From Rebecca billardiae RCC1528 (lineage: Eukaryota > Protista > Haptophyta), in the NCBI GenBank assembly GCA_965240325.2, contig OZ251236.1:248001-312000 (forward strand): a stretch of DNA of 64,000 nucleotides, written 5' to 3'. Below are positions 4,654-52,390 of the stretch, in pieces. The notes beneath the pieces are model-generated. The model made no database searches. It had not been told where the DNA came from and saw only the letters and a program-made list of their open reading frames with translations. Each line of letters opens with the position of its first letter. Position 1 is the stretch's first letter. Position numbers and translations under genes: made by a program.

Positions 4654-7600
4654 TCACGACCTGCTGGCCGCGAGCCGCTCGGCGAGCAGCGTGCCCTGGC
4701 CGGCCAGGGGCTCGAGGAAGAGCAGCTTGAGCACGAGGCAGGCCGCCCAGACGAGCATCACCTGCTCGCGCCAGAGGGCGGGGTCGCGCAGCCGGCTGCC
4801 CAGCCGCTCGCCGACGATCGAGAGGCCGAGCAGCGCGACGATGAGCACGGCGGCGGCGGCGAGGTGGGCGGCCCACACGAGCTTGCGCTTCCACGCCTTG
4901 GGCTTGTTGGCCCACCAGTTGGCCTGCTGCAGCTGGCTGCGCGAGAGGCGCACGCGCTTCTGCACGCGCTGCTGCGTCAGCGGGCTGGTGGCCTCCTGCG
5001 ACGCGTCGTACGCGGCCCCGGCGGCGCGGATGGCGATGTCCGGTGCGGCGATCACCTGCGCCTGCGTCACCGGCGTGTCCGACTCGAACGGCGGCCAGTA
5101 CACGGCCGTGATCATCTTCGCGTACTTGCGCTTGCCGCCGCTCCCGTCGCCGTCGCCACGCAGCCGCGCGCCGAACGTCGTCTCGACCTCGGCGCGCAGC
5201 GCGGGCGCGGCGCGGTACACCGTCTCGACCTGCACGAAGCGCACGTCCGGCAGCTCGCCCTCGCCAAGCTCGATGTGCACCTCGCCGAGGTCCTCGTCAG
5301 CCCCGCGGGTCACCTGCGTGAACAGCTCCTGGATGATCGACGGCCGGTTGCGCATGCTCAACTCGCGCTCCGCGCGCGCCTCGCGCGCAGCCGCGCCTGC
5401 CACGAAGAAGCCGACCATGTGCTCGTCGTGCATCGGGATGGAGACGAGCGCCTCCTCGGGCAGCTCGAGGCGCATCGTGCCGGGCGCCACCGAGCCGCGC
5501 CGCGGCGCCGAGTTGCCGCCGGCGCGCTCAGGCCGCACGCGCTCGCTCAGGTTGTCAGCGGTGACGTTTGCGAGGCTGAAGCTGCGCGTGAGCGAGTGCT
5601 TGAGGCCACCGGGGCCGTCCCGGCCCACGCGCGACATGCCCGTCGGGCGGACGTACAGAAGGCGCTGCCGGCCGCCCTGCGCGCGCGCGCTGTTGGCCGC
5701 GCCGCTTGCCGAGCTGTCCCTCGAGGGCGCGCGGTGCATGCCGCCGGCGGTGGCGCCTCCCGCCGCCTGCGGCACGTTGTGCGCGTACGTGCGCGTCGCA
5801 CCGGTGCCGCCCTCGGCGGCATCCGCGCCCACCGGCTGGCGGAGCGCGCGCTGGCGCTCCTCCTCCGTGAGCGTCTCACCCCGGCGCGCGCGCAGCAGCC
5901 CGCTCCGCTTCGCCGCCCACACGCTCAGCTGCTTGAAGACGAACGTGGCGGGGAACGAGGCGCCGAGCCCGGCGAGCGCGGCAAGCCCCAGCCAGAGCAG
6001 CCGTGCGTCGACCGCCTGGCCGAGCACGAGCGAGATGGCGAGGATCTCGACGAGCGTCGAGTTGAACTGGGCCATCAGCCGCTGCGTCGCCGTCATCGGC
6101 TCGCCCGGCAGGCGCACGAGCCACGAGGTGACCATCGAACGCCGCAGCACGTTGGTGAGCACGCGCCACGCGATCGATGTGCGCGCGAGGTGCATCCACC
6201 CGGGCACGCGCGGCTCAACGTCCACGCGCCGGTCCACGACGCGCGCGACCAAGTGCAGCCCGGCGTACAGCGCGACCAGGACGCACACCACGACCACGCC
6301 CCTGCGAGGCGGCGTGCGACGGCGAAGGGCGGCGGGCGGGCGGTGAGCGCGAGCTGAGGATGGCGCACAGCGCTGCTGCGCCGCGCGTGCGCACTGGCGC
6401 GCACCAGTAGTTGGCGGCGAGCCGCTCGGCGAGGGCGCCAATGCCGCCCTGCTCTCCGGAGTCCGACTGGGTGCGAGCGGCCGTCGTCGACTCCTCGATC
6501 GGTGCGGACGGCGGCGGGCTCGAGACGATCGGGTCCACGCCCTCCTGCTGCGCGCCCGCGAGCTCGCTCTGCGACGCCTCCGGATCGATGGAGCCGTCGG
6601 CCACGCCCGCAACCAGCTCGGTGCCGCGCTCCTGCGTGACGCGCGCCACCTCGCCGAGCGCAGCCGTGATGGCGGCCGCGCCACGGTTGCTCGAGATCGC
6701 CTGTGACAGCGCCGGGCGGCGTGGCGCGATGGGTGCTACGCGTCAGCGCGCGGGCGCGGCCTCGGGTGCGCCGGCACCGCGGAAGGGCGCCGCGCACGCG
6801 CGCGACAGGCGTCGCGGCGCGCGCAGTCACCGTCTGGGCAGCGGCGGCGACACCGTCGAGCGCGGCCTTCATCACGGCGATCGCCGCGGCCGTGCGGTTG
6901 GTCGCGTTGCCCACGAGACTGGACGGGTCCACGGCCGCGCTCACGACCGTCTCGAGCGTGCTTTGCTCCTGCGTGACGCCGCGCGCGCGGGCAGCCGCGT
7001 GCGGCGGGTGAGAGCGAGCGCGGGCGCGCGCGGCGCCCGCAGTCGCGCGCGGCGCGCGCACGGCCAGGCGCGGCGGGTGGCGGCGGGCGAGGCAGGCGCG
7101 GGCGCGCACCGAGAGCACCGACAGCAAGGGCAGGCTCGGCGCGCTGCTGTTCCCCGCACTGCCGCCGTCCTCGTCGACCGGCGGCGCGGTGTCGACCATC
7201 TCCCGCCCGCGCTCAGTGAGGACGGTCGCGAGCGCGCGCATCACGGCCTCGGCCTTCTCCTCGGCGTCCTCCTCCGCCCCGTCCTCCGGGGACGCGCTGG
7301 TGCGCGCGACTGCGCGGCCAATCTCCACGGCCTGCATCACGACCGACGCCGTCTGCGTGAGCGCGCTCACCGTCTTGATCGACAGCTCGCGCTGCTCCGC
7401 CGTCACGCCCGCGCCGTCCGACTGCGAGAGCGCGAGGAACGGGTCATACTGGTAGACGGACGCCGTGCCGGTCAGCCCGCCCAGCCCGAGGGAGACGAGG
7501 AGGTCGCGCTCCGCGGTCGGGCTCGTGGGGGCGTTGGCGAGCAGCGTGGTGAGCGGCGTGAGCACCGTGGCCACGCCGCGCGTCTCGAAGGCCACGGTCG

Positions 7601-10600
7601 GCTGGAGGCCTGTCGTGATGTCCACGCAGCCAGGCGTGCCGATGCGCAGCTTGACGCGCATCGCACGCCGCTCCGCGTCAGACAGCCCCGCCAGAGTGTC
7701 CTCCGAAAAGGTGTAGTACCCGTTCTCCGCGCCGGTGATGTTGGACGGCTCCGTGGACGGGTCGTGCCGCCCGTCGTTGTCCAGGTCGAGGTACACGGTG
7801 CAGCCGCGGAAGTAGCCGTCAAAGGCGTGGCCGCACACGGGAGCCAGGCCGTCGGCGCAGGTGCGCTGGCCCGGAGCAGCGCACCCCGAGCCGGTGCAGC
7901 CGGCGGGCGGCGAGCTGGGCGGCGGCGGCGAGGGCGGCGGGCTCGGCGGCGGCGTTGGGGGTGGCGACGGCGGCGGGCTCGGTGGTGGGCTGGGCGGCGG
8001 GCTGGGCGGCGGCGGCGGCGGGCTGGGCGGCGGGCTGGGCGGCGGCAATGGCGGCGGGCTGGGCGGCGGCGGGCTGGGCGGCGGGCTGGGCGGCGGGCTG
8101 GGTGGTGGCGACGGCGGCGGCGACGGCGGCGGCGGGCTGGGCGGCGGTGATGGCGGCGGGCTCGGTGGCAGTGATGGCGGCGGGCTGGGCAGCGGCGTTG
8201 GCGGCGGCGAGGGCGGCGGGCTCGGCGGCGGGCTCGGTGGCGGGCTCGGCGGCGGGCTGGGCGGCGGGCTCGGCGGCGGCGAGGGCGGCGGGCTCGGTGG
8301 CGGCGATGGCGGAGGGGAAGGCGGCGGGCTCGGCGGTGGCGAGGGCGGCGGGCTCGGCGGCGTGCTGGGCGGCGGGCTGGGCGGCGGGCTGGGCGGCGGG
8401 CTGGGCGGCGGCGAGGGCGGTGGGCTGGGCGGCGGGCTGGGCGGCGGGCTTGGCGGCGGCGAGGGCGGCGGGCTCGGCGGTGGCGACGGTGGCGGCGACG
8501 GTGGCGGGCTTGGAGGCGGGCTGGGCGGCGGGCTGGGCGGCGGGCTTGGCGGCGGCGACGGTGGTGGCGAGGGCGGCGGGCTCGGCGGCGGGCTCGGTGG
8601 TGGCGATGGCGGCGGCGATGGTGGCGGCGATGGCGGCGGGCTGGGCGGCGGGCTCGGCGGCGGCGATGGCGGCGGGCTCGGTGGCGGAGACGGCGGCAGG
8701 CTGGGCGGCGGGCTTGGCGGCGGCGACGGTGGTGGCGAGGGCGGCGGGCTCGGCGGCGGGCTCGGTGGTGGCGATGGCGGCGGCGATGGTGGCGGCGATG
8801 GCGGCGGGCTGGGCGGCGGGCTTGGCGGCGGCGATGGCGGCGGGCTTGGTGGCGGGCTGGGCGGCGGGCTTGGCGGCGGCGACGGAGGCGGGCTCGGCGG
8901 TGGCGACGGTGGCGGCGACGGTGGCGGAGAGGGCGGCGGGCTGGGCGGACGTGACGGCGGAGGGCTCGGCGGTGGCGATGGCGGCGGGCTCGGCGGCGGC
9001 GGCGATGGCGGCGGCGATGGCGGCGGCGATGGCGGCGGGCTTGGCGGCGGCGGCGGCGAGGGTGGCGGCGAGGGTGGCGGCGAGGGTGGCGGGCTCGGCG
9101 GCGGTGACGGCGGCGGGCTGGGTGGTGGGCTGGGCGGCGGGCTGGGGGGTGGCGATGGCGGTGGGCTCGGTGGCGGCGACGGTGGCGGGCTGGGCGGCGG
9201 CGATGGCGGTGGGCTCGGCGGCGGGCTGGGCGGCGGCGGCGAGGGCGGCGGGCTGGGTGGCGGGCTGGGCGGCGGGCTTGACGGCGGTGACGGAGGCGGG
9301 CTCGGCGGTGGCGACGGTGGCGGCGACGGTGGCGGAGAGGGCGGCGGGCTGGGCGGACGTGACGGCGGAGGGCTCGGCGGTGGCGATGGCGGCGGGCTCG
9401 GCGGCGGCGGCGATGGCGGCGGCGATGGCGGCGGCGATGGCGGCGGGCTTGGCGGCGGCGGCGGCGAGGGTGGCGGCGAGGGTGGCGGCGAGGGTGGCGG
9501 GCTCGGCGGCGGTGACGGCGGCGGGCTGGGTGGTGGGCTGGGCGGCGGGCTGGGGGGGGGCGATGGCGGCGGGCTCGGTGGCGGCGACGGTGGCGGGCTG
9601 GGCGGCGGCGATGGCGGCGGGCTCGGCGGCGGGCTGGGCGGCGGCGGCGAGGGCGGCGGGCTTGGTGGCGGGCTGGGCGGCGGGCTTGACGGCGGTGACG
9701 GAGGCGGGCTCGGCGGTGGCGACGGTGGCGGCGACGGTGGCGGAGAGGGCGGCGGGCTGGGCGGAGGTGATGGCGGAGGGCTCGGCGGTGGCGATGGCGG
9801 CGGGCTCGGCGGCGGCGGTGATGGCGGTGGCGATGGCGGCGGCGATGGCGGCGGGCTTGGCGGCGGCGGCGGCGAGGGTGGCGGCGAGGGTGGCGGCGAG
9901 GGTGGCGGGCTCGGCGGCGGTGACGGCGGCGGGCTGGGTGGTGGGCTGGGCGGCGGGCTAGGGGGGGGCGATGGCGGCGGGCTCGGTGGCGGCGACGGTG
10001 GCGGGCTCGGCGGCGGCGATGGCGGCGGGCTCGGCGGCGGGCTGGGCGGCGGCGGCGAGGGCGGCGGGCTGGGTGGCGGGCTGGGCGGCGGGCTGGGCGG
10101 CGGTGACGGAGGCAGGCTCGGCGGTGGCGACGGTGGCGGCGATGGTGGCGGAGAGGGCGGCGGGCTGGGCGGACGTGACGGCGGAGGGCTCGGCGGTGGC
10201 GATGGCGGCGGGCTCGGCGGCGGCGGTGATGGCGGCGGCGATGGCGGCGGCGATGGCGGCGGGCTTGGCGGCGGCGGCGGCGAGGGTGGCGGCGAGGGTG
10301 GCGGCGAGGGTGGCGGGCTCGGCGGCGGTGACGGCGGCGGGCTGGGTGGTGGGCTGGGCGGCGGGCTGGGGGGGGGCGATGGCGGCGGGCTCGGTGGCGG
10401 CGACGGCGGCGGGCTCGGCGGCGGCGATGGCGGTGGGCTCGGCGGCGGGCTGGGCGGCGGCGGCGAGGGCGGCGGGCTGGGTGGCGGGCTGGGCGGCGGG
10501 CTTGGCGGCGGTGACGGAGGCGGGCTCGGCGGTGGCGACGGTGGCGGCGACGGTGGCGGAGAGGGCGGCGGGCTGGGCGGAGGTGACGGCGGAGGGCTCG

Positions 10601-13600
10601 GCGGTGGCGATGGCGGCGGGCTCGGCGGCGGCGGCGATGGCGGCGGCGATGGCGGCGGCGATGGCGGCGGGCTTGGCGGCGGCGGCGGCGAGGGTGGCGG
10701 CGAGGGTGGCGGTGACGGCGGCAGGCTGGGTGGTGGGCTGGGCGGCGGGCTGGGGGGCGGCGACGGTGGCGGGCTGGGCGGCGGCGATGGCGGTGGGCTC
10801 GGCGGCGGGCTGGGTGGCGGCGGCGCGGGCGGCGGGCTGGGTGGCGGGCTGGGCGGCGGGCTTGGCGGCGGTGACGGAGGCAGGCTCGGCGGTGGCGACG
10901 GTGGCGGCGACGGTGGCGGAGAGGGCGGCGGGCTGGGCGGACGTGACGGCGGAGGGCTCGGCGGTGGCGATGGCGGCGGGCTCGGCGGCGGCGGCAATGG
11001 CGGCGGCGATGGCGGCGGCGATGGCGGCGGGCTTGGCGGCGGCGGCGGCGAGGGTGGTGGCGAGGGTGGCGGCGAGGGTGGCGGGCTCGGCGGTGGTGAC
11101 GGCGGCGGGCTGGGTGGTGGGCTGGGCGGCGGGCTGGGGGGTGGCGATGGCGGCAGGCCCGGTGGCGGCGACGGTGGCGGGCTCGGCGGCGGCGATGGCG
11201 GTGGGCTCGGCGGCGGGCTGGGCGGCGGCGGCGAGGGCGGCGGGCTGGGTGGCGGGCTGGGCGGCGGGCTTGGCGGCGGTGACGGAGGCGGGCTCGGCGG
11301 TGGCGGCGGTGGCGGCGACGGTGGCGGAGAGGGCGGCGGGCTGGGCGGAGGTGACGGCGGAGGGCTCGGCGGTGGCGATGGCGGCGGGCTCGGCGGCGGC
11401 GGTGATGGCGGCGGCGATGGCGGCGGCGATGGCGGCGGGCTTGGCGGCGGCGGCGGCGAGGGTGGTGGCGAGGGTGGCGGCGAGGGTGGCGGGCTCGGCG
11501 GCGGTGACGGCGGCGGGCTGGGTGGTGGGCTGGGCGGCGGGCTGGGGGGTGGCGATGGCGGCAGGCTCGGTGGCGGCGACGGTGGCGGGCTCGGCGGCGG
11601 CGATGGCGGTGGGCTCGGCGGCGGGCTGGGCGGCGGCGGCGAGGGCGGCGGGCTGGGTGGCGGGCTGGGCGGCGGGCTTGGCGGCGGTGACGGAGGCGGG
11701 CTCGGCGGTGGCGACGGTGGCGGCGACGGTGGCGGAGAGGGCGGCGGGCTGGGCGGAGGTGATGGCGGAGGGCTCGGCGGTGGCGATGGCGGCGGGCTCG
11801 GCGGCGGCGGCGATGGCGGCGGCGATGGCGGCGGCGAGGGCGGCGGCGAGGGCGGCGGCGAGGGTGGCGGCGGCGGCGAGGGCGGCGGCGAGGGCGACGG
11901 GGGCGGCGAGGGCGGCGGCGAGGGTGGCGGCGGCGGCGAGGGCGGTGGCGAGGGTGGCGGCGAGGGTGGCGGCGGCGGCGAGGGCGGCGGCGAGGGTGGC
12001 GGCGGTGGCGAGGGCGGCGGCGAGGGCGACGGCGGCGGCGAGGGCGGCGGCGAGGGTGGCGGCGGCGGCGAGGGCGGCGGCGAGGGTGGCGGCGAGGGCG
12101 GCGGCGGCGGCGAGGGCGGCGGCGAGGGCGGTGGCGACGGGCACTCGGCAAGAGTGCTGAGGTCCGGGTTGAACTTGGTGTTGCTCGCGAAAGGCGTGAG
12201 CGCGCAGAAGTCACTGCCGTCGTAAAACCTGTGATGCAGTGAGGGGGGAGGGGGCGCGGGTGGGGCGGGGAACGCGTTGGCCATCAACCCTGCCAGCGCG
12301 TGGGGGCCGACGATGCTGCCACCGTGCGGAAGACTGCAAGGCTCCTCAGGTGGACACGCCCTCTTGAGCAGGCGAGCAGCCCAGGCGGCAGGCAGAACGC
12401 AGCTGGCTGGCGTGTGGGGGCGCGCGTGCGCAGGCACACATACAATCCGCTGGAGGACAAAGCAGTCAGCTGCAACACCTCTGTTGGCATGGCGCCGCCG
12501 AGCGAGTTGGAGTTGAGATACCTGTCACTCGTGTGGTGGGAGGAGCGCCGGGTGGCAGCACGCATAACAATGCACGTCAGGTTCCAAGCGGTGTGCATGC
12601 GCCACACGCGGGGAGAGGGAAGTGGTGCGATCTCTTGGGGTCGTTGGTGCGCGCTGCTGCGCGCACAAGAACTGCATGCTCGCCATTGCGCCCACTTCCG
12701 AGGGCAGGCTGCCTGTGAGCGAGTTGAAGTGGAGACGCCTGTCACGCGTGTGATGGGAGGAGCGCCGGGTGGCAGCACGCATAACAATGCACGTCAGATT
12801 GCACGCGGTGTGTGTACGCCACACGCGGGGGGCGGAGAGTGATGCAACCTCTGGGGGCGGTTGGTGCTCGCTGCTGCGCGCACAGTTGAGTCATGCTCGT
12901 CATTGCGCCCACTTCCGAGGGCAGGCTGCCTGTGAGCGAGTTGAAGTTGAGCCACCTGTCACGCGTGTGGTGGGAGGAGCGCCGGGTGGCAGCACGCATA
13001 ACAATGCACGTCAGATTCCAAGCGGTGTGCATGCGCCACGCGTGGGGGGAGGAGAGTGGTGCGATCTCTGGGGGCGGTTGGTGCTCGCTGCTGCGCGCAC
13101 AAGAACTGCATGCTCGCCATTGCGCCCACTTCCGAGGGCAGGCTGCCTGTGAGCGAGTTGGAGAAGAGAAACCTGGCACGCGTGTGGTGGGAGGAGCGGC
13201 GGGTGGCAGCACGCATAACAATGCACGTCAGCTTCCATGCGGTGTGCATGCGCCACGCGTGGGGGGAGGAGAGTGGTGCGATCTCTGGGGGCGGTTGGTG
13301 CTCGCTGCTGCGCGCACAGCCACTGCAAGCTCGCCATTGCGCCCACTTCGGTAGGGATGCTCCCGACGAGAGCGTTTCCGTCGAGAAACCTGCGACCAGG
13401 CAGCAGCATGAGGGGGGGATGCCATCAGCCAAGGCAGAGGTGACCAGATCGTCCGCTGGTGGCGCGCAAGAAGGCGTATGCCGCGCAGAAAAGCACGTCG
13501 TACACTTTGGGCACATTGACCATGTAGCCGACCTCGGTGGGTATCGTGCCTGTCTTGCCAGCACCCCTGTACGCGCTGCGCTCGGTCGTTTCCAAGCGGG

Positions 13601-16072
13601 CAGCGCGCAAAGCATGATGACGCGCAGGGCGGGCAGGCCAGCGCGGGCGGTGTGTAAGCGCAACGACGCTGAGCGCGCACGTGCGCGAGCGCGCGCGCGC
13701 GGAGGGGAAGGGGTTGCTCTGCAGCGCGGTCACAGCGACGCACATGTCCCTAGCAATGCCATTGCACGCGAGCTCGTTGAATGTGCCCGAGTCAGGGAAG
13801 CACTGGGGGTAGTCTGTCAGCATCGCATCGCGCAGGCTAGATGATGCGGCCGTCTCGACCTGGGCGATCAGCGCGCAGGAGATGAGCATTGCTTTCGCGA
13901 GCGGAACGTGGCTCGTGCACGAAGTCCGCAGCCGAGGGAGGCCCAAAGGGGAGACACGTCGACAGGAAACCACGTGGTGGTAGAAGAACGTCAGCAAAAA
14001 GCATGCGACGAGCATGCGCAGGCAACCACCAATGACCAGTTCGTGCCGTGGTGAGATGGTCTTCTGCTCCTTGTTGATCATGCAAGCAAGCGCGTGCCAT
14101 GGAGGCGCGTTGGTCTTCTGCTGCTTGGTCGCCGCCTCGGCCGGCATGCCCGTGAGCGCGTGCGGCGGTGGCGCGTTGGTCTGGTGCTGCTTGGTCGCCG
14201 CGTCGGCCGGCGTGCACGTGAGCGCGTGCGGCGGCGGCGCGTTGGTCTTCTGCTGCTTGGTCGCCGCCTCGGCCGGCATGCCCGTGAGCGCGTGCGGCGG
14301 TGGCGCGTTGGTCTGGTGCTGCTTGGTCGCCGCGTCGGCCGGCATGCCCGTGAGCGCGTGTGGCGGCGGCGCGTTGGTCTGGTGCTCCGTCATCAGCGTG
14401 TCGGCCGGCGTGCCCGTGAGCGCGTGCGGCGGCGGCGCGTTGGTCTGGTGCTCCGTCATCATCAGCGTGTCGGCCGGCGTGCCCGTGAGCGCGCGCGGCG
14501 GCGGCGCGTTGGTCTTCTGCTGCTTGGTCGCCGCCTCGGCCGGCATGCCCGTGAGCGCGTGCGGCGGTGGCGCGTTGGTCTGGTGCTGCTTGGTCGCCGC
14601 GTCGGCCGGCGTGCACGTGAGCGCGTGCGGCGGCGGCGCGTTGGTCTTCTGCTGCTTGGTCGCCACGTCGGCCGACATGCCCGTGAGCGCGTGCGGCGGC
14701 GGCGCGTTGGTCTTCTGCTGCTTGGTCGCCACGTCGGCCGACATGCCCGTGAGCGCGTGCGGCGGCGGCGCGTTGGTCTTCTGCTGCTTGGTCGCCACGT
14801 CGGCCGGCATGCCCGTGAGCGCGCGCGGCGGCGGCGCGTTGGTCTTGTGCTCCGTCATCATCAGTGTGTCGGCCGGCATGCCCGTGAGCGCGTGCGGCGG
14901 CGGCGCGTTGGTCTGGTGCTCCGTCATCAGCGTGTCCGCCGGCGTGCCCGTGAGCGCGTGCGGCGGCGGCGCGTTGGTCTGGTGCTCCGTCATCATCGTG
15001 TCGGCCGGCGTGCCCGTGAGCGCGTGCGGCGGCGGCGCGTTGGTCTGGTGCTCCGTCATCATCGTGTCGGCCGGCGTGCCCGTGAGCGCGTGCGGCGGCG
15101 GCGCGTTGGTCTGGTGCTCCGTCATCATCGTGTCGGCCGGCGTGCACGTGAGCGCGTGCGGCGGCGGCGCGTTGGTCTTCTGCTGCTTGGTCGCCACGTC
15201 GGCCGACATGCCCGTGAGCGCGTGCGGCGGCGGCGCGTTGGTCTTCTGCTGCTTGGTCGCCACGTCGGCCGACATGCCCGTGAGCGCGTGCGGCGGCGGC
15301 GCGATGGTATGGTGCTCCGTCATCAGCGCGTCAGCCGGCGTGCCCGTGAGCGCGTGCGGCGGCGTCACGTAGGTCTTGTGCTGCTTGGCCGCCGCGTCCG
15401 CCGCGTCGATCGGCATGCCCGCGAGCTCGCGCGGCGGCGGCGCGAGTGCGCGCTGTGGCGACGTGTCGTCAATCTTCGTCGGCATGGGGAGTGAGGCGCC
15501 ATCGTGCAGCGCGGAAGGCGGAGCCGATCCGGCGCCGTCGTCGCCTGGTCCGGCCTCCTGGCCTGCGAATCAAATGGCGGGCGAAAAACAGCAGCAGGGA
15601 AAAGCAAAACAAAAAGGCGGATCAAATGCAGCGCGCAGATTGCCAGATACCGCCGACGCGCGGCGCGGCGCCCGCGGGGGCGAGCGCGCGGCGCGCCCTC
15701 GGCATGCGCGCTTCGCGCCACGCACACGCACCTGCATCAAGCGTGATCGTCAGGCCCTGGGTCTTGTTGAAATCGGTGTTGGTCGGCGCGCCCGAGAGCG
15801 CGGGCGCGGGCGCGTCGCCGCTATTGCGCCCCTCAGCCGCCACCGCTCGGCCGGCGGCGCTGACGGCGCGTGACGACAGCGTGCGCTGCGCCGGGGGGCG
15901 ATCGGCGAGGTGCATGGCACGGTCTGCCGAGCCCCAGGCCGCGTGCGTCAGGTCGGCCGGGTCGATGCGCGCACAAATGCCGCCGCCGTGCGCAGCGGCA
16001 TGCGCGAGCACGGCGATGAGCGCGATGCCCACGGCGCCGACGATCGAGCTGAGCTTCGCCGCGCGAGTTCCG
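4654..16072 (-). CDS. Giant multi-exon membrane protein: hydrophobic segment, 22-aa repeats, 6 plant-type LRRs, (SPPP)n extensin-like stalk, bacterial-type Ca-binding module and polycystin-1-like TM region; start codon probably further upstream (~16.2-16.35 kb)
   Basis: Exons that join in frame (top-bottom): 16072-15732, 15562-~13721, 13575-13504, 13389-13318, 13172-13101, 12955-12884, 12738-12667, 12521-12444, 12228-7110, 6968-6831, 6700-6405, 6301-4654. All junctions are GT-AG except the ~13721 donor, which is probably GC and least certain. LRR consensus is LxLxxNSLTGSLPSEVGAMxSxxxL. Confidence 0.75.
7913..12140 (-). repeat. Coding (Ser-Pro3-4)n repeat of ~1400 codons with a 408-bp higher-order period
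   Basis: Translation of ORF 6093-12437. The marker GACGGAGGC recurs at 8881, 9289, 9697, 10105, 10513, 10873, 11281 and 11689, spaced 408 bp except one 360-bp interval. Confidence 0.95.
12522..13389 (-). repeat. Tandem array of four 217-bp units, each a 72-nt LRR exon plus a 145-nt intron
   Basis: Introns 12522-12666, 12739-12883, 12956-13100 and 13173-13317 are near-identical, each with a GTGCGC donor, a CTGAC branch-like motif and a CAG acceptor on the minus strand. The exons are exactly 72 nt and phase 2/2. Confidence 0.92.
14094..15440 (-). repeat. Coding minisatellite, ~20 copies of 66 bp (some 69 bp): (K/Q)TNAPPPHALTG(M/T)PAD followed by AATKQQ or TMMTEH
   Basis: A 66-bp period is visible in the DNA (GCGCGTTGG at 14105, 14171 and onward) and in ORF 13425-15485. 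Confidence 0.95.
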
Positions 16073-16763
16073 CTGTCCGGCTTGGCATGCGTGGCGCATG
16101 CACGGGGGCGAAGGGCCTGCGCGCACGCGCCGCCGCAGCGCCCACACCCCACGCGCGCGCCAGGGCCATCGGTGAGGCCAGTCGCCGCCCGCGCCGCGGA
16201 GTCGCGCGGCCGCCCGCGCCCGCGGCCGCACAGCGCGGCTGCTGCGCATGACGACTGCCCAGCCGCCCGGAAAGCGTTCGACAATGGTCGAAGCGGCCGC
16301 GGGATCGGTGTGACGATGCGTAGCACGCACCTTGCAAGTTGTCATCGAAATCCGTGCGGGCGCTGCGGCGGGGGGGGGGGGGGGGCTTTGTCACGCGAGC
16401 CGTGGCAAATGAGACGACGAGAGGCGGCAGGAGGATCCGTGCCACCGGCTTTGCCTGCACAAAGGGAATCTGTCAGACACGTCAAATCATCAGTTCTTCA
16501 ACTGAGAAGAAGTACTCCGACACCACGCGGAATGATCAGCAATAATGAAATGGTGTGTGTCATTGATTAAACCGCATACTGAGTCTCTATTGTACAGGTA
16601 GCATAATGAGTACTAGTAATAGTAGTAAACTGCTGGACGCACGCAGCTTAAACAGTCTAAAGTATTTATTACGACGTCTCTTATTCTTAGTAAACTGTAT
16701 GCTCTGCCACCATCAACGCTGAGGTGCGTCCTGATTATTCATCTATGACGACAGGTATTTCCG

Positions 16764-17779
16764 TATCTCTTTATTGGTACCCATCGGGTGAAGCCCCGGT
16801 CCCGGGGCTCGTGCATGGCGGCACTTCGAGCCTCCGCCGCGAGGCATAGAAGCTGGTGCGTCGGTGGGGATCTTGCTGGGCATGTTGCGCATGGTGTCTT
16901 GTACCCTCACCGTGGCCCTCGTCTCGTTGTCCACCGGGTTACGGCCTGCACAATGCACGCGATCGTGCGCGGTGCCGGGCAAACGTCTGCGTGAGCCGCG
17001 CAGCATGAGCATCCGCGTGCCGCTTCCATCGGCTCTGCTGAGGTACGTTGTGGGTGCGTTGTGTGAGGGAGGCTGTGAGACGTGTCTCTGGTCCCCTCAG
17101 GATAGCTGCTAAGGTGCGTCTCGACCAATGCAGGCGTGGATGCTGCGTTGCGTGTGCCGCGAATCTGCTGTCGTGCCGTGCTCTCACACGGGTAGTAGTC
17201 CGTGGCGGCTGCACGGCACCATTCAAAGTGCGCTGCTACAGTCAGGCGTGGGGCAGCGTGTAGCCTCATGTAGTTCAGTCACCCCAGTCCACATCTGAGT
17301 CGCCCCATGCATCACTACGGCCTCGGTGCGGATGTGACGTGTCACGGTCGTGGCCGCACGGCGACATGCAGCACGGCTGCCCCGCCGTTGTCGGCGGAGC
17401 ACATCTGAGTCGAACTACAGGCAGAGAAGGGGTTGCCGCCGCATTGGGGCACCCACAGGCCACGCTGGGGCAATTGACATCGAGTCACAGCACGCGCAAT
17501 GGCTAGCAGTAGCTCGTTTGCGGTGTACTCAAGTGAAGCCCCGGGTCCGGGGCTTGGCGGAATCCGCTTCTCCGGACCTATCCGGACTCTCACTCAGTGA
17601 CGGCTGTATATGTGACATACGTAGTGACATCCGAAGTTGAAGTACCCTAAATTGATGTCGCTGAATCGATCTGTCACCGGCACTCAAGCGCGTAAAACCA
17701 CGTATTCAGCCGTAATTGCGTGATACATAGTAGCTTGAAGCCCCGGGGCCGGGGCTTCGGGTATTCCGCCAAAGAGCTA
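16764..17779. repeat. Three copies of a GAAGCCCCGG-NN-CCGGGGCT(TC) hairpin with a related flank, two direct and one inverted; possible degenerate TIR element
   Basis: Hairpins at 16790-16809, 17535-17555 and 17737-17758. Flank 17510-17530 matches the reverse complement of 17759-17779 at 16/21 positions. Confidence 0.7.
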
Positions 17780-19750: not shown

Positions 19751-20097
19751 AAAGAGAGACAAAGTTGATGGTGCTCGTGCTCCTCAACGGCATGGAACTA
19801 GTCCACGAGACTCGCGGCTTGAACTCTTCGTCTGATGCCCTCCACAACGACGTGCGCGACGGGCGTGAGCGCCATGGTGGTCGAGCGCAAAACAGCCGGG
19901 ATTTTGGTGTCTCATTCTGCTTCGTTAATCTTGTCCGCCATGTGTGCGCATCGATCAAGCTCACAAAACCGTCAACGGCTTTCAATTAATATTATTCATA
20001 AGCGCACAAAACGGTCAAAACCGTCAGCTAAGCACCAAAACGGCTGGACGCCGCAGACCTCGACCTTGTGGGTGGCCTCCTAACCGCCGCGGACGCG

Positions 20098-23094
20098 ATG
20101 CCGATGGCGCACAACGCGGGGAACGCGGGCCGCGGGCCGGGCGTGGGCGTGGGCGCGGGTGGGCGTGGTGGGCGTGGCCCCAATGTGGCCAAGCGCCCGC
20201 CGTGGAACGACGACTTTGCTGCCAACGCCGTGGCGCGCGCGCAGGCGGAGAACGTGGCTAACCTCGCGCCGCGCGCGCCGCCGTCTTCGGCGGGCGGCCG
20301 CGGCCCAGCGGCGGGCATGCCGGCGGGTGCGCGGCCGGCAGGGGGCGCGGGCCGGCCGCTCCCCGGCCGTGGGGCCCCGCTCGGCCCCGCCGGCGCCGGC
20401 GCCGGCGCCGCCGTGCCCGCCGCGGCGGCGCGCGGCTTTGTGCAAGAGTCTCTCTCGTCGACGATGCCGCGCTGCCAGCAGCACGTGTACGTGGGCGACC
20501 GCGTGCGCGACCGGCACTCGGGGCGGATGGGCGTGGCGATGTACATCGGCCCCGCCGAGTTCGCGCGGGGCAACACCGTCGTCGGCCTGCGCCTGGACAA
20601 CGCGCGCACGACAACCGACTGCGATGGCAAGTTCAAGGGCGAGCGCTACTTCCGCTGCACGCCGGGGCACGGGCTGTACATCCCGTTCGACGACGCGGAG
20701 GTGCTCGGCGGGGAGGACGCCGCGGCGGGCGGCGCCTTCGAGGGCAAGCCCGCCCCGCTCGGCGCGCCGCCCGCGGCCGGCGGCGCGCCGGCGGCCGCGC
20801 GCGGCGGCGGCGGCGGCGGCGGCGGCGCGGGCGCTCACAACCAGAACGCCAACCCGAACGCGAAGGGCGGCGGCGGCGGCCCGGAGCTGCCGCCGCCGGA
20901 GGACATCGCCGACCTCGAGCGCGAGGTGGAGCAGCTCGTCGGCCTCGCCGACGTCAAGGCGATGCTCCAGTCGCTGCGCAACTCGGTCGAGGTCCAGCGG
21001 CGGCGCGCGCACCTCGGCGTCAAGGAGGAGCGCGTGCTCAATATGCTCTTCCTGGGTAATCCGGGTACGGGGAAGACGAAGGTGGCGAAGCTGGTGGCGC
21101 GGATGATGCGCTCGCTCGGCGTGCTGCAGAGCGGCCAGCTCGTCGAGGTCACGCGCAAGGACCTCATCGGCCCGCACCACGGCGAGACCGCGCAGCTCAC
21201 GTGCGACGCGGTGAAGCGCGCGCTTGGCGGCGTTCTATTTATAGACGAGGCCTATGCGCTCAAGCACGAGGGCTCGTCGGACTCGGGCGGGCAGGAGGCG
21301 ATCAACACGCTGGTGAAGGAGATCGAGGACCACCAGGGCGAGCTCGTCGTCATCCTCGCGGGGTACCAGCGCGAGATGACCGCCTTCCTCTCCTCCAACT
21401 CGGGACTGACCTCGCGGTTCCCGCACAACTTCAACTTTGCCGACTACACGGCGGAGGAGATGTCGTGCATCCTGAGGGTGATGGTCTCGGAGCGCGGCTT
21501 CACGCTGGACGAGGGGCTGCGCGACGACGCGAAGCTGCTCGCGCTCGTGCAGCAGCTCGTGAAGGGCACCGAGGCCGCCAAGGGCAACGGCCGCCTCGTG
21601 CGCAACCTCGTCGAGCAGGCGATCAAGCGGCAGACCGACCGCGTCTTCAAGATGGGTACCGTCTCGCGCGAGCGGCTCGTCACGCTGACTGAGCCCGATT
21701 TCTTCGAGGACGCGGCGAGCGAGCAGTCGATGGGCGACGTGCTCGCGCGGCTGGACGAGGTGATCGGGCTCGACGACGCCAAGTCCTTCATGCGCTCGCT
21801 CGCCGCGCAGCTGCAGGTCAACCGCGAGCGCAAGGAGGCGGGTCTGCCGACCGGCGCCGAGCAGTCGCTGCATATGCTGTTCGTGGGTAATCCGGGTACG
21901 GGCAAGACGACGATGGCGCGGATGGTGGCGAGCCTGCTCAAGTCGCTGCGCATGCTGCGGCTGGGCCACGTCGTCGAGGCGGACCGCGGCTCGTTCGTCG
22001 CGGGCTACGCCGGCCAGACCGCCATCAAGACGCGCGCGGTCGTCGAGTCCGCCCTCGGCGGCGTGCTCATTGTCGACGAGGTGCGCCGCTGCCGCTGCCG
22101 CTGCCGCTGCCGCGCGCCGCTGCCGCTGCCGCGCGCCGCTGCCTGCCGCTGCCTGCCGCTGCCTGCCGCTGCCTGCCGCTGCCTGCCGCTGCCGCGCGGC
22201 GTGCCGCACGCGGCGTGCCTCCTGCGTCGTGCGCGCGCATGCTGGCGCCGCGCCCCGCTCCTCGCTTCGCCCGGCTCACGCACCCTCGTCCTCCGCCTCC
22301 CTCCCCTCGCGTGTGCCCGCCCGCGCCCTCGCCCGCCGGCCGCCCGCCCGCCCTCCCGCCGCCCGCCACGCACTCGCGCGCGCACAGGCGTACGCGCTGG
22401 TCGAGGACGCGAAGGACTCGTTCGGCCGCGAGGCGCTCGACACGATCGTGAAGATGCTCGAGGACAACCGCGACGACATCGTGGCGATCCTCGCGGGCTA
22501 CCCACATGAGATGAAGCAGCTGATGTCGGTCAACCCGGGCCTGGCCTCGCGCTTCCCGACGACCGTCAATTTCAGAGACTACTCGGCGAGCGAGCTCATG
22601 GCGATCGCGGACAAGATGCTGCTGGAGGAGCACCTCACGCTGCGCGAGGACGCGCGCTCGCACCTGCTCACGCAGCTCCAACGCGTCTCCAACGTGCGCG
22701 CACCGCCGCGCCGCGCGTGTGACGCGCGAGCGAGCGCGCGCGCGGACGCGCGCGCGGCCTGCGCGCGCGGACGCACCGCCGCTCGGCACAGGGCTCTCAC
22801 GCGCGCGCCCGCCACCCTCGGCGCCCGACGCGCCGCCGCTCGCAGTCGCAGAGCAAGGCCTCGGGCAACGCGCGCGCGGTGCGCAACATGCTCGAGCAGG
22901 CCAAGAGGCGACAGGCGCTCCGGCTCGTCAACATCCCGGGCAAGAAGTCTGCGGAGGAGCTTGTCCTGCTCACGGCTGAGGACGTGAGCGCCGCGGCCGA
23001 GCTCGTGCACGAGACGATGCGGCCACACGGGCACGGCGGCGGCGCGCGAAGAGGCGGCGACGATCGCGACGGCGGCGCGATCGCGCCCGCCTGA
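20098..23094 (+). CDS. CAP-Gly domain protein with two tandem CbbX/SpoVK-type AAA+ ATPase domains
   Basis: CAP-Gly-like VGDRV...YIGPAEFARGNTVVGLRLD...CDGKFKGERYFRC...GLYI. Two Walker A motifs (GNPGTGKT), Walker B FIDEAY and IVDE|AY, plus ILAGY, SRF and GNxRxVRN motifs in both domains. Introns at 22081-22387 and 22694-22845 restore the motifs. Confidence 0.9.
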
Positions 23095-41404: not shown

Positions 41405-44400
41405 TCATCGCACGCTCATCAGGTCTGTGGTGTACACGAAGTGGCGCTGCCGCTTGACCGGCTTGGCCGCGGCCGGCGCGGGCGGCGCGAACCGGTGCGC
41501 GACGCTCATCGCGGGGAGCAGCGCGTCGCGCGGCGGCGGCGAGCGTCGGTGCGGCGCGAGCGCGGCGCGCAGCTCGGGCGCTCGGTCCGGGCCGCGCGCG
41601 CGCGCGCGCGCGGGCTGCTCGGCGGCGTCGTGCGGCCCGGCCACGGCGGGCGCGCGCTGCGCGCGGCGGGCGGCGCCGTCGGCCGCCGCCGCCGTCGCCG
41701 GGGGCGTCGGATTCGCCGACGATGCCGCCGGCGGCGGCGTCGTCGGCAGCAGCGGCGGCAGCTCGGCCGGGCGCCGCGGCGGCGGGCGCGGCGGCGCGGG
41801 CGCCACCTCGGCGCGCGCCGCCGCGTCGGAAGCGCCGGCCTGGGCGCTGCCGCCGGCGGCGGGCGCGGCGGCGGGCACCGGCGCGTGGGGCCTGCCCGAG
41901 CGCAGGGAGCCGCGCGACGCCGAGACGCGCCGCGTCTCGCCCAGCAGCAGCGGGTGCGGCGCGCGCCACGCCGAGGCCGCCTCGAGCGACGGCGCGACGG
42001 CGGCGCCGCCGGCGGCGAGCGGCGGCGGTCGCTCGCCCTCGTGCTGCGCTGCGGTGAGGAGGAGGGCGCGCTGGCGCACGGCGCGCGGCGAGGCGCGGCG
42101 CGCGGCGTCGAGCCCGCCGCGCGGCGGCCGCGCCACGGGCGGCAGCGCGCCCGCGCCCAGCGCCGCGCGGACCACCTCCTCCACGCGCGTCGCCACCCAG
42201 CCGCGCATCGTCGCGGCGCGAGCTCCAAGCTCGTGCTCGCCGACGCCGCGGAGCAGCCGTCGCAACTCGGGCTCGGCGATCTCGAGGGCGCGGAGCGGGG
42301 TCTGCGCGACGAGCCGCCACGCGTGCCGTGGCACCAGCGTCTCGAGCGTCGCGGCGCAGAGCACGTTGCCCCCGCCGAGCATCATCACGCTCAGCTCGTG
42401 CCCGTGCGCGCCGTGCGCGCCGCCGTGCGCGCCGTGCGCGCCACTCAGCGAGTGCGCGGCGTGCAGCGTGCCGTGAGAGGAGGGCGCGCGCCGGCCGTCA
42501 CGGCCGGCGGCGGCGGCGGCGGCGGCACCGCCGTCGTCGCCACCGCCCGCCCCGCCGCCGCTCGGGCGGAGTGGCGAGCCCAGCTTTGGCGAGCTCGTGC
42601 CCGCGGCCGCCGCCGCGCCGCCGCCGCGCCGCCGACCGCCAGGCGTGCGCGCCTTGCCCGCGGCCGCCTCCGCGTCAGCGGACCCGCCGCCGCCGCTGGT
42701 TGCACTGCCGCCGCCGCCGCCGGCGGCGGCGGCGGCGGCGCCCGTGGAGAGCGCGGTGGCGCGGCTGGTCGGCGGCGGCGCGAGCGCGAGCGTCTTGTTC
42801 CGCTCCAGCCTCGCGCGCTCCGCGCGCGCCTCGTCGAGCGCCTCGCGCGCACTCACTGCGAGCCGACACTCACCAGAGACCAACAGCAGAGCGCGCGGCG
42901 GCGCGCACGCGCGCTCGCTCGCGAGCACCTCACCGCGGCGGATCTCGCAGTGGGTGAAGAGCGGCGCGACCCTGAGCAGCTCCGCCTCCGCCGCGGCGCG
43001 CGCCTCCGCCGCCGTCCCCGCCGCCGCGTGCGCCTGCGCCAGCCGCGGTCCGGGGAAGAGTCCGGATGCCGAGAGCAGCGCCGCCGTGCGCTCGAGGCCC
43101 GCCACGTGCGCCGCCGCGCCGCCGTGCGCGCGGTACGCGGCGCGCGAGATGGCGAGGACTTCGACCGGGCCGACGGCGCGCGCGGAGGAGTCGGGAGGGT
43201 CGCCGAGCGCGGCGGCGGTCTCGTTGATCGCCTCGCCCGCCCCGACCGTGCGCTCGAGCGCCTCCCACCGCCACGCGCCGTGCGTCTGCGCCGCGGCCGC
43301 GCCCGCCGCGCCGGCCGCGCCCGGCTCGCGCGTCGACGCGCCAGCGCCACCAAAGGCCCTCGCCACCTCGGCTGCGTCGAGGCCCTCTTCGAAGCCGCGC
43401 AGCGCGGCGGCGGCCGCTCGGCCGAGCATCGAGCGGCGGCGCGGCGTGGTGCCCCCGCCGCCGCCCGTCGCGCCGCCGCCGCCCGCGCCGCCGCCGCCAC
43501 CCGCCATCCCGCCGCCCTCCCCCGACCCGCCCGCCGGCCCGACCGCTGCGGTCGCATAGAGGCGGCCAGTTAGAGTGTTGACTGACACGTGCACGTGCAC
43601 GCTCGCCTGGCCCGAGAGCAGGATGAGCACGTCGGTCGGCGCGAAGCCGAGGTAGCTGCCGCCGCCCGCGCCGGCGCCGCCGGCGCCGCCGGGCTTGGAG
43701 CGCGGCGCGGCCGCGCCGGCGCCACCGCCGACGCCTGCCACGCCCGCCGCGCCGCCGCTGCGTGGGTGCATGCAGATGCGGACTCCCGCGCCGACGCGCG
43801 CATACATCACGCCCTTGCACAGCTCGCGCGCGTCCTCCTCCGCCAGCCTGGCGAAGAAGGGCAGCGCGCGCACGCGCTCAAGCAGCGCGGACACGTCCTC
43901 CGACGTGCGGCTCGCGCGCGGCTTGGCGCACGCCAGGTTGAACGCGGCGTCGGCGCGCGCGGCCCAGAGCATGCCTGCGCACACGCCGTCGTCGGCGCCG
44001 GCGCCGTCGGCGCGCCGGGCGGGCGGGCGGGTGGTGCGTGTCAGCGGTGCCGAGCGCGAGGTCGCGCGTATGGGCACGCGCGCACGCGCGCACAGCCAGG
44101 GCAGCGCACGCAGCGCACGCGGCGCCCACAGCGCACGCAGCGCGCAGTGCGGCACAGCACACAGCGCACGCAGCGCATGCGCAGCGCCGCGCGCAGCGCG
44201 CAGCGCGCAGCGCGCACGTTCGGTGAGCGCCGAGAGCAGCACGTCCTTGCTGAGGAGCAGGATGGTGGCGCCGCCCGCGCCCGCACCGCGCCCGCCCGTG
44301 CCCGCGGAGCCGAGCACCGCCGCGTTCCGCCGCAGCCCCTCCTGCAGCAGAGCCGCTTCGCCCACGAGCGCGCCTGCGTGCAGAGTTGACACGTGGCGCA

Positions 44401-49435: not shown

Positions 49436-50099
49436 TCACTGCTCGGCGCCCGGCGTCTGCGGCGAGCCCGCCTTGGCCTTGGCGCGTCCGCCCCTCGACT
49501 TGCGCCCAAAGCTCGAGGAGCGCTTGAGGATCTCGTTCTTGAGTACCTCCTCGACGGAGACGGTGAGCGGGCGCTCGGAGGGCAGCGGCACCGTGCCGGC
49601 CACCGACGAGCGCCGGCCGTCGGGCGAGCAGCCGCCGCCGCCGCCCGGCGGCGGCGCGCCGCCGCCACCGTAATAAGATGCCTCGGGCGCGGGGCCGGTG
49701 GCGGCGCGGGCGCCGTCGGCGGCGCCGCCGGCGCGGCGGCGGCGTCCGAAGGAATTGGCGCGGCGCACGCCGCCCTGCGCCTGCTGCTGTGCGCGGGGCG
49801 GCGGCGCGGGGATGGACGCCGCGGCGGCGGCGACCGCCGCATACCCGCCGCAGCAGCAGTGGCCGCCTCCGCCCGGCGAGGCGCCGCCCGCCGCGCCGCC
49901 CCACGCGCCGCCGCCGCCGCCGCCACCGTCCGCATACGCACCGGGCGCCGCGCCCGCTCCCGGGCCCGCCGCCCAGCTCGGCAGCGGCGGCGGCGGCGCG
50001 GCGGCGCCCGGCCCCGCCGCGGCCGACGGCGGCGCGATCGGCGGCTGCGCGCGCCCGCGCCGCCGCCCGAACGACTGCACGCGCTGGAGACCACTGCCC

Positions 50100-50174
<75 letters not shown>

Positions 50175-52081: not shown

Positions 52082-52147
<66 letters not shown>

Positions 52148-52357: not shown

Positions 52358-52390
<33 letters not shown>

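Follow-up and report, generated by a model that had tools for sequence, protein, structure and literature searches.

A probable single gene for a chimeric surface receptor that joins plant-type LRRs, a Ser-Pro3 rod and a five-helix membrane module in a high-GC alga

The minus strand of the window, i.e., the whole 64,000-nt stretch of Rebecca billardiae RCC1528 DNA analyzed here, carries a series of open reading frame pieces, and the locus raises the question of whether these pieces form one gene and what kind of protein it would encode. The initial annotation had read them as a single multi-exon gene, and every piece is present where it had been placed. In our hand-built model, 13 exons run from 16345 to 4654 and give a CDS of 9,849 nt (3,282 aa) without an internal stop. 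All 12 introns are GT-AG and 103-215 nt long, with donors mostly GTGCG[CT] and acceptors CAG|G. The predicted protein has a hydrophobic N-terminus, about twenty 22-aa repeats, one or two hydrophobic segments and a Cys cap, followed by six plant-type LRRs, a hinge with two Cys, a Ser-Pro3 tract of 1,413 aa, an orphan module and a 5-TM module that includes a cytosolic alpha/beta domain. The open frame across the 13 exons bears out the domain order that had been proposed, and the gene is longer than the earlier end at 16072 allowed, with exon 2 extending to 16116 and a candidate ATG at 16345. We favor, with moderate confidence, one gene for a chimeric hydroxyproline-rich surface receptor. From the LRR cap through to the stop codon, the sequence gives good support for one gene, and the 5' third (signal-like segment, 22-aa repeats and hydrophobic hairpin) probably belongs to the same protein as the LRR-rod-TM part.

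Base composition was profiled along the locus. No minus-strand TGTAA occurs inside the gene, and GC dips only at 16400-16800 and at about 3800. GC3 reaches 0.92-0.97 in both the 22-aa repeats and the large exons, compared with 0.74-0.83 in the LRR cassette, and these codon-position GC signatures lend coding support to the gene model. Plus-strand ORFs over the same region were rejected: they show a mirrored GC3 signal, but their GC1 is lower than their GC2, and homology places the last exon on the minus strand. As a caution for annotation, prokaryote-style ORF calling cuts a gene of this kind into more than 10 pieces.

Certainty is lowest for the 5' exons, which are plausible on splice logic together with weak to moderate GC3 signals. 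The putative exon 1 (16331-16345) consists of the first ATG past a low-GC, promoter-like stretch, four codons and an AAG|GTGCGT donor; its assignment is speculative, with no other ATG between 16490 and 16345 and a donor score that is best in its class. Exon 2 (15732-16116) would encode a basic N-terminus, a hydrophobic segment (model residues 29-47) that may be a signal peptide or an anchor, and a non-repetitive region. GC3 is 0.83-0.90 in its coding frame versus 0.57-0.77 in the two other frames, and its in-frame junction to exon 3 uses a GCAG|GTGCGT donor at 15732/15731 and a CAG acceptor at 15564-15563 with a strong polypyrimidine tract. Exon 3 (13744-15562) holds the 22-aa repeats, the hydrophobic segment or segments, and the Cys-containing LRR N-cap (13744-13859). 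At 14089-15403 a 66-nt unit is repeated 19.8 times; each of its 22 codons ends in G or C, and two 3-nt insertions preserve the frame. Variation among the copies is spread as 41/39/33 over the three codon positions, without a third-position bias, which counts against this part of the model.

Between the repeats and the cap, one hydrophobic segment lies at model residues 642-665 and a borderline second one at 686-702 (short, KD about 1.6). We considered whether this part is spliced out and rejected the idea, since its composition resembles the LRR exons and not the introns, and since no usable in-frame donor is available: all in-frame donors score <= -1.3 versus >= 7 for the model donors, a comparison that is only indicative, since these same donors served to train the PWM. 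The third Cys formerly assigned to the cap (in "CVAVTAL") most likely falls inside intron 3, whose donor is at 13743.

The LRR head is built from six short exons on the minus strand, in agreement with the count of six LRRs given before. Exon 4 (13504-13566, 63 nt) encodes a short first LRR with the motif G-x-I-P-x-E-V-G in an open frame between a CAG acceptor and a GTACGA donor. Four LRR exons of exactly 72 nt follow within 12667-13389 (13318-13389, 13101-13172, 12884-12955 and 12667-12738), separated by 145-nt introns into a tandem unit of 217 nt, and they share identical GTGCGC donors, CAG acceptors and phase 2 introns throughout. The sixth LRR is encoded by exon 9 (12444-12521, 78 nt), with a GTATGT donor at 12443; an alternative GTGCCT donor at 12437 is equally compatible in phase. 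A profile of five LRR exons matched only plant LRR-RLK ectodomains in the PDB (MIK2, 2.8e-14; FLS2, 1.3e-8), and the matches at E <= 0.01 were all LRR-RLKs, with no LRX chain among them. Pfam and NCBIfam searches with the unspliced pieces and with single LRR exons gave no matches. Judged by the profile, the LRRs are of the plant-specific type.

LRR exons 1 and 2 differ at 20 of 72 nt and their introns at 4 of 145 (Fisher 1e-7), and 12 of the 14 amino-acid differences in LRR units 2-4 are found at positions 1, 3, 4, 22 and 23. The recently duplicated repeats differ mainly at predicted concave-face positions, so that the "variable LRR head" of the initial annotation holds. The 145-nt introns were also examined as dispersed introners, a candidate rejected on finding only four copies within the window. 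The hinge at the start of exon 10 (12138-12228; acceptor CACAG|G at 12230-12229) contributes the expected Cys hinge, with two Cys between the LRRs and the rod, and the hinge region has no signal-peptide-like start for a separate rod gene.

The Ser-Pro3 rod (7899-12137) is organized in a 408-nt higher-order repeat. The SPPP tract, previously estimated at about 1400 aa, was counted at 1,413 aa, i.e., 1,054 Pro, 338 Ser and 21 other residues, with 288 S-P3 units, 98.5% Ser plus Pro and no Tyr. Its Ser residues come from both AGC (161) and TCN (177) codons, and the frame is unbroken over 4.2 kb. At about 0.31 nm per residue the tract would reach about 0.44 µm, close to the stalk of roughly 0.4 micrometre that had been calculated, the length being derived from the residue count; a published poly-Pro rod of 429 residues corresponds to 133 nm (PMC11015965). 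The module expected after the rod was found in the same exon as a non-repetitive, Cys-containing stretch of 263 aa (7110-7898; GC3 0.94). It has no relatives in Pfam/NCBIfam, in word-indexed searches or in scans of metagenome and prokaryote-genome contigs. It was also considered as a remnant of a REJ/GAIN region such as that of the relatives described below, and this was rejected, as BLASTP against the ectodomains of two of them (L001 and L002) returned noise and no GPS pattern is present.

Exons 11 (6831-6968) and 12 (6405-6700) encode an Ala-rich juxtamembrane stalk that ends in an ...NYW motif; this motif spans the last intron and also occurs in homologue P0002 directly before TM1. Exon 13 (4654-6301; stop codon 4654-4656) encodes the 5-TM module and a roughly 350-residue cytosolic insert that is largely disordered and contains a conserved alpha/beta domain. 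Hydropathy and an AF2 model both give five C-terminal TM helices, matching the multi-pass region of the initial annotation. An exhaustive phmmer search recovered 10 homologues of the module (P0001-P0010), all of them metagenome or sequencing-run proteins, which represent 10 clusters among 1.84 billion representative proteins. The best covers the whole last exon with 40% identity over 544 residues (E 5e-67), and the next reaches E 2e-58 over about 540 residues. Only this search worked: word-indexed homology searches, in which low-complexity words probably swamped the candidate lists, found no relatives, and neither did scans of metagenome and prokaryote-genome contigs for the TM module. Six sequences share 32 invariant columns, the family motifs being W-L-x-R-L-P-G-E, A-A-K-R, V-G-F-F-V, D-V-R-F-V-Q and W-W-x-N-K-P-K. 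With similarity over its full length, the window module is assigned on sequence to a small, uncharacterized 5-TM family.

A single-sequence AF2 prediction of the TM module was unusable (pLDDT 41), and an 11-sequence alignment was used instead (mean pLDDT 60, pTM 0.38; TM helices 76-88, beta domain 70-87). A GPS lies directly before the module in 4 of the 10 homologues (L001, L002, L004 and L005), with the spliced GPS motif completed in L001 and L002, and the ectodomain of L002 also has REJ (8.5e-30) and TIG (7e-17) domains. These four relatives, one of them with REJ, provide a tangible entry point to a rare family of algal receptors. The window, by comparison, has no C-x-C-x-H-L-T (GPS) pattern in any frame, and Pfam found no REJ in the window pieces. 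Homologue P0006 combines a signal peptide and a short ectodomain with a C-terminal Sec7 domain, which indicates that the module is oriented with its N-terminus outside and its C-terminus inside.

The membrane unit had been described as polycystin-like, which is true of its context only, in that relatives carry the module behind REJ/GPS ectodomains, and does not hold by sequence or fold. Pfam PKD_channel has no match in the window protein or the 10 homologues, nor has PLAT; the family profile retrieves no polycystin or TRP chain from the PDB even at E <= 10; and Foldseek of the AF2 model (pLDDT 60) against the PDB gives a best E of 1.8, with no channel. The TM4-TM5 loop, at about 17 residues, is too short for pore helices and a filter, and the roughly 350-residue cytosolic insert sits where the S4-S5 linker would be. 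On these sequence and model comparisons, the predicted membrane anchor is not a polycystin channel. The same observations weigh against the module being a very divergent partial PKD2-like domain, as in MST3 of Chlamydomonas, that forms a channel with a SIP-like helper and PKD2. In the number of TM helices (five) and in orientation (N-terminus out, C-terminus in) it does match S2-S6 of MST3, both domains stand behind a poly-Pro rod, LRRs occur in some MST3 relatives, and the REJ/GPS ectodomains of the module family are of the polycystin-1 type, but we consider such a domain highly improbable here.

The gene boundaries could also be drawn differently. The hydrophobic part before the LRR cap might separate two adjacent products, the upstream one a mucin-like type I membrane protein in which a signal peptide and the 22-aa repeats are followed by a TM anchor (model residues 642-665), and the other a separate LRR-rod-5TM receptor. 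The latter would start at an ATG near 14018, with its start (M-L-V-A-C-F-L-L...) as a cleaved signal peptide and the LRR head free at the rod tip. This ATG is indeed followed by a signal-peptide-like segment, GC3 shifts sharply from 0.97 to 0.74 at about 14090, and the division would remove the topology parity problem without a hairpin while agreeing with the free-N-terminus design of MST3. However, no stop interrupts the reading frame between 15562 and 13744, neither a GC dip nor a TGTAA lies between the repeats and the LRR part, the ATG follows the last repeat by only about 70 nt (no room for a 3' end and a promoter), and an internal start would need an alternative promoter; two products thus seem unlikely to us. 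A break further downstream would make the rod part a secreted LRX-like wall protein and the 5-TM exon an independent gene, the in-frame junctions being fortuitous. Plant LRXs do lack a TM domain, and P0006 illustrates that a homologue of the TM module can exist with a short ectodomain. Yet with three canonical introns taken out, the frame that follows the rod and the orphan module reaches its first stop only past the TM module, the homologous juxtamembrane motif bridges the last intron, no ATG with a signal peptide is present upstream of TM1, and the 7.9-6.3 kb interval has no GC dip and no TGTAA, which leaves this second break scarcely credible.

For the single 13-exon gene that we favor, an anchor with its N-terminus outside and its C-terminus inside would make the LRRs, rod and orphan module extracellular. 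A topology obeying the positive-inside rule would run from a signal peptide through external repeats and a TM hairpin with an Arg-rich cytosolic turn to the external LRR, rod and module and finally the 5-TM module. If the N-terminal segment and just one pre-LRR segment crossed the membrane, the LRRs and rod would be cytoplasmic. An uncleaved hairpin before the LRRs would leave the rod membrane-tethered at both ends, a poor fit with a free head. The proposal of a stalk that holds the LRR head outside the cell covering therefore stands as to rod length but is qualified as to a free head: the hydrophobic segments lie directly before the LRR cap and, unless cleaved, would tether the LRR end, so that the rod could not simply hold a free head outside the covering.

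As a working mechanism, the Ser-Pro3 tract would be hydroxylated and glycosylated to give a stiff polyproline-II rod of about 0.44 µm, and the LRR face would bind a variable external ligand, e.g., a mate, neighbor, wall or microbe molecule. Ligand binding or mechanical load might then be relayed along the rod to the 5-TM module and, through the conserved cytosolic domain of that module, to intracellular effectors; the signaling step through this module is something that we purely infer. The usual REJ/GAIN-GPS ectodomain of the receptor family would, in evolutionary terms, have been exchanged for an LRR-on-rod cassette. We tentatively suggest, as a possibility short of a probability, that a new class of algal surface receptor is characterized by this 5-TM module and cytosolic alpha/beta domain, normally joined to GAIN/GPS and in one relative also to REJ, and that exchange of the autoproteolytic ectodomain here produced a long-reach recognition or mechanosensing receptor or a strut. 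If so, adhesion GPCRs and polycystin-1 would be joined by a third class, and the diversifying binding face would point to long-reach recognition or mechanosensing; with both ends anchored, a membrane-to-membrane strut would result instead. With sequence changes on the predicted binding face of its duplicated LRR units, the protein is a candidate for cell-cell, mating or microbe recognition, and such a natural domain-swap experiment could reveal how a membrane domain reads a ligand bound, or a force applied, to the end of a stiff glycoprotein rod.

Several known receptor systems are comparable in layout. Adhesion GPCRs resemble the module family in placing a modular adhesive ectodomain and a GAIN/GPS before a multi-pass signaling domain, but the family has 5 TM helices rather than 7 and no 7tm_2 match, and the window member is without a GPS. 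Polycystin-1, PKDREJ, the sea-urchin REJ receptors and Ectocarpus Esi0130_0068 (PMC4700764) share with relatives of the window module a large ectodomain and a GPS before TM1, and with L002 also TIG and REJ, and a surface recognition or mechanosensory role would be a further likeness. The window gene differs in having no REJ, GPS, PLAT or PKD channel domain and 5 rather than 11 TM helices, and no sequence homology is demonstrable between the TM parts of its module and those of the polycystin-1/REJ receptors.

The land-plant LRXs (leucine-rich repeat extensins) resemble the window protein in the order of their parts: an N-terminal plant-type LRR region is followed in both by a Cys hinge (two Cys here) and Ser-Pro(3-5) repeats. 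The "convergent LRX analogue" of the initial annotation therefore holds as a resemblance and fails as a membership: LRXs are secreted wall proteins without TM segments, whereas the window protein has five TM helices after the rod and hydrophobic segments before the LRRs, i.e., membrane segments on both sides. An LRX also contains about 11 LRRs together with a conserved N-terminal domain and motifs for Tyr cross-linking, in contrast to 6 LRRs, only 2 hinge Cys and no Tyr in 1,413 residues here. The window protein is not an LRX, and LRXs were not found in four algae surveyed (PMC4769139). The same survey describes green-algal "long chimeric extensins" of >2,000 aa, in which many SP3-5 repeats are fused to non-extensin domains; chlorophytes are the only group for which they are reported, C. 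reinhardtii having 27, Volvox 84 and Ostreococcus lucimarinus 4 (PMC4769139). With 3,282 aa, 288 S-P3 units and LRR plus TM domains, the window protein fits this class, which is descriptive and not a homology family; the LRR-plus-5-TM combination is not described in PMC4769139.

A parallel design is that of Chlamydomonas reinhardtii MST3 and seven other "incomplete PKD domain" proteins, which combine LRR, SRCR, SEA or C-type lectin domains with a membrane-integral domain (Cell 2024, PMC11015965). All except Cre11.g479383 have long poly-Pro/Hyp rods, which are viewed as a spacer or ruler of about 0.31 nm per residue (PMC11015965). Like the window protein, these proteins are very large and have extracellular adhesive or recognition domains and a C-terminal multi-pass membrane domain with its N-terminus outside. 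They differ in having a recognizable partial PKD2 fold completed by SIP, whereas neither Pfam nor the PDB profile nor Foldseek gives any PKD signal for the window's 5-TM module, which carries a large cytosolic alpha/beta insert; their rods are made of P13/P11(XXP)3 units, whereas that of the window is nearly pure Ser-Pro3. A membrane-anchored rod is thus not unprecedented, and the window gene parallels the MST3-like proteins with a different anchor. Membrane-anchored hydroxyproline rods with recognition domains are not confined to PKD2-type anchors, the rod here being carried by a different, uncharacterized 5-TM module.

All open reading frame pieces listed for the gene in the initial annotation were found on the minus strand by direct reading of the window. 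We assembled them into an exon model by reading the DNA at every boundary, in combination with exon-pattern searches. The exons lie on the minus strand at 16345-16331 (exon 1), 16116-15732 (2), 15562-13744 (3), 13566-13504 (4), 13389-13318 (5), 13172-13101 (6), 12955-12884 (7), 12738-12667 (8), 12521-12444 (9), 12228-7110 (10), 6968-6831 (11), 6700-6405 (12) and 6301-4654 (13). Joined, they give a predicted gene of 9,849 nt encoding 3,282 aa, with the sole stop at its end. All 12 introns (103-215 nt) are GT-AG, with donors near GTGCG[CT] and acceptors of the form CAG/G. The donor GTGCGCGC is the same in the intron that interrupts the GPS motif of L001, a homologous locus of the five-transmembrane (5-TM) module, so this splice style is real for such organisms. 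A second homologous locus, L002, has a similar break; in both (L001 ~1490-1640, L002 ~5080-5240) the intron lies immediately behind H-L-T of the motif. Given the common donor, the source organisms of these sequencing-run contigs and of the window are probably related.

The GC content of the window is 60-86% across its first 24 kb, and the sequence is eukaryotic. Pfam domains elsewhere in the window were CAP-Gly with an AAA ATPase (20068-22506, plus), a cNMP-binding domain (41408-45631, minus), a myosin head (49439-54886, minus), DUF2499 with DUF3593 (a plastid-lineage pair) in one ORF (55216-57486, minus) and C2HC zinc fingers (56984-60637, plus). Together these domains mark the source as a photosynthetic eukaryote. 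The neighboring stop-free ORFs of 750-1,800 aa suggest an intron-poor genome, the LRR region excepted.

Composition pointed to the minus strand as coding. GC3 reaches 0.96 for exon 13 and 0.97-0.98 for the 22-aa repeats, with values of 0.91-0.94 for exons 11 and 12 as well as for the orphan module (a 263-aa Cys-containing stretch between the Ser-Pro3 rod and the juxtamembrane exons), and GC1 exceeds GC2 in all of these. Third positions of the repeat unit are G/C in 22/22 cases, for which we estimate a chance of ~0.004 for one unit at 74% GC, and the array keeps its frame through two 3-nt insertions. The mirrored plus-strand frame was rejected as the coding strand, having GC1 < GC2 plus a stop. 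GC3 of exon 2 is 0.83-0.90, versus 0.57-0.77 in the other frames. From the post-repeat segment through the N-cap (the Cys-containing LRR cap ending exon 3) and LRR exons to the hinge (the two-Cys start of exon 10), GC3 is 0.74-0.83 with GC1 and GC2 ~0.5, a lower yet codon-like signature, unlike that of the introns (74% GC). A compositional break thus sets 12138-14090 apart from the remaining exons (0.92-0.98, exon 2 excepted), and the LRR cassette may differ in origin or age, by exon shuffling.

The part from the LRRs through the stop codon is very likely one gene unit. The rod and the orphan module share one exon, the three introns downstream of the orphan module are canonical and in frame, and the last of them interrupts the NYW motif, which is found ahead of TM1 in the homologous protein P0002. 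A 215-nt gap separates the hinge exon from the last LRR exon, and the hinge exon contains no ATG that opens a signal peptide. Within the gene there is neither a minus-strand TGTAA, the volvocine poly(A) signal, nor a GC drop; GC dips only at the flanks, at 16400-16800 (0.43-0.49) and near 3800 (0.53). The AT-richer 16400-16800 region resembles a promoter or intergenic region and precedes a run of 14-17 C on the minus strand (16370-16386), close upstream of the putative ATG (16345). TGTAA occurs eight times in the 64-kb window (5 minus, 3 plus), and on the minus strand of the first 20 kb only at 1509, 18630 and 19219, none close to the stop at 4654, which implies a long 3' UTR or a different poly(A) signal in this host.

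Searched as a profile against the PDB, the five full LRR exons matched exclusively plant LRR receptor-kinase ectodomains, including MIK2 (2.8e-14), FLS2 (1.3e-8), At4g26540, ERL1/2, GSO1 and HSL1, which identifies the predicted LRRs as the plant-specific 24-residue type. Four units are 217-nt tandem copies (72-nt exon plus 145-nt intron; 12522-13389), in which the introns are 87-97% identical versus 65-93% for the exons. Units 1 and 2 differ at 20/72 exon and 4/145 intron positions (Fisher 1e-7). This excess divergence of exons suggests either diversifying selection on them or gene conversion that affected the introns alone. Of the 14 pairwise amino-acid differences among units 2-4, 12 fall at exon positions 1, 3, 4, 22 and 23, which correspond to x in the xxLxLxx strand (predicted concave face), the usual ligand face of LRRs; the proposed variable LRR head is thereby supported.

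The Ser-Pro tract comprises 1,413 codons (Pro 1,054, Ser 338, others 21), its frame intact across 4.2 kb. Its serines use both AGC (161) and TCN (177) codons, a mixture that favors selection acting at the peptide level. A 408-nt higher-order repeat (7906-12140; 10.4 copies, 81% matches) indicates that the rod grew via duplication of 34-unit blocks and is no collapsed simple repeat. Tyr is absent from the tract, hence no extensin-type cross-link motif. By analogy with a poly-Pro rod of 429 residues measuring 133 nm, i.e., 0.31 nm per residue (PMC11015965), the fully extended rod would be ~0.44 µm long. Domain-family, homology and contig-scan searches detected no relatives of the orphan module, nor did BLASTP reveal resemblance to the ectodomains of L001 and L002.

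Against 1.84 billion representatives, an exhaustive search with phmmer returned 10 proteins matching the 5-TM module. None of them is named, and all derive from assemblies of metagenomes or sequencing runs; the top two span the entire module (40% identity, E 5e-67; 37%, E 2e-58). In the family alignment, conserved motifs flank five hydrophobic helices and a cytosolic domain, and an AF2 model (11 sequences) gave pLDDT 76-88 for the TM helices and 70-87 for the alpha/beta domain. The loop joining the last two helices has ~17 residues. A polycystin relationship, claimed initially for the membrane unit, is not detectable: Pfam found no PKD_channel or PLAT in the module or its homologues, the family profile had no PDB match (lowest E 1.3, an unrelated antigen), and Foldseek found nothing (best E 1.8). 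Upstream of the module, however, L002 has a 1,711-aa ORF with TIG (7e-17), REJ (8.5e-30) and GPS (1.2e-5); a GPS also lies just upstream of TM1 in L001, L004 and P0007, and excision of one intron restores the canonical C-x-C-x-H-L-T-D-F-A-A ~70 residues ahead of TM1 in L001 and L002. The GPS pattern is absent from every frame of the window gene. Given these contexts, "polycystin-like" applies to the ectodomain partners of the family only, and not to the membrane unit or the window gene's own ectodomain.

The GPS ectodomains of the relatives, the order in P0006 (signal peptide, ~55 residues, 5-TM module, Sec7 domain) and positive-inside loops lead us to infer that the module's N-terminus is outside and its C-terminus inside, which would place the LRRs, rod and orphan module extracellularly. 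The Sec7 (Arf-GEF) domain is C-terminal in P0006 (residues 1019-1127), a hint that the cytosolic side may connect to Arf or membrane-traffic signaling. The 5' third of the model is weaker than the part from LRR to stop. Exons 2 and 3 join in frame with a strong donor, polypyrimidine tract and acceptor, and exon 3 is an unbroken ORF running from the 22-aa repeats through hydrophobic segments to the N-cap. A signal-like segment at model residues 29-47 combined with a single TM at 642-665 would leave the LRRs and rod intracellular, contradicting the module orientation.

Three arrangements are consistent with an extracellular LRR region: a hairpin of 642-665 and the borderline segment 686-702 with its Arg-rich turn inside; an exon 2 hydrophobic segment left untranslated; or a separate product from an ATG near 14018, whose hydrophobic start would be a cleaved signal peptide. 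Splicing out the pre-LRR hydrophobic segment was also considered, and no acceptable donor was found (indicative, the PWM being trained on the model's own donors). Under the hairpin or the untranslated segment, the LRR end stays attached to the membrane and the rod forms a giant extracellular loop or strut, not a free stalk. The free LRR head on a stalk initially envisaged thus requires cleavage or the separate product.

Among known systems, LRXs were not found in four algae surveyed, and many "long chimeric extensins" of > 2,000 aa are known in green algae (PMC4769139); that class label fits the window gene, whereas its TM domains exclude it from the LRXs. It shares its design with the group of Chlamydomonas MST3 and seven other proteins, which combine large extracellular regions, bearing LRR, SRCR or SEA domains and, in all except Cre11.g479383, poly-Pro tracts, with a partial PKD2 domain that SIP completes (PMC11015965). 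It does not qualify as a polycystin, being without channel, REJ, GPS and PLAT features; a multi-pass gamete receptor with REJ and GPS, under positive selection, is known from Ectocarpus (PMC4700764). The initial interpretation is partly supported: it holds for the single gene, domain order and variable LRR head, but not for a polycystin-like membrane unit. New in the window gene are its anchor and its domain combination: the 5-TM module may mark an undescribed class of GPS-coupled receptors, and the window gene may have arisen by natural exchange of the ectodomain for one whose LRR face is diversifying.
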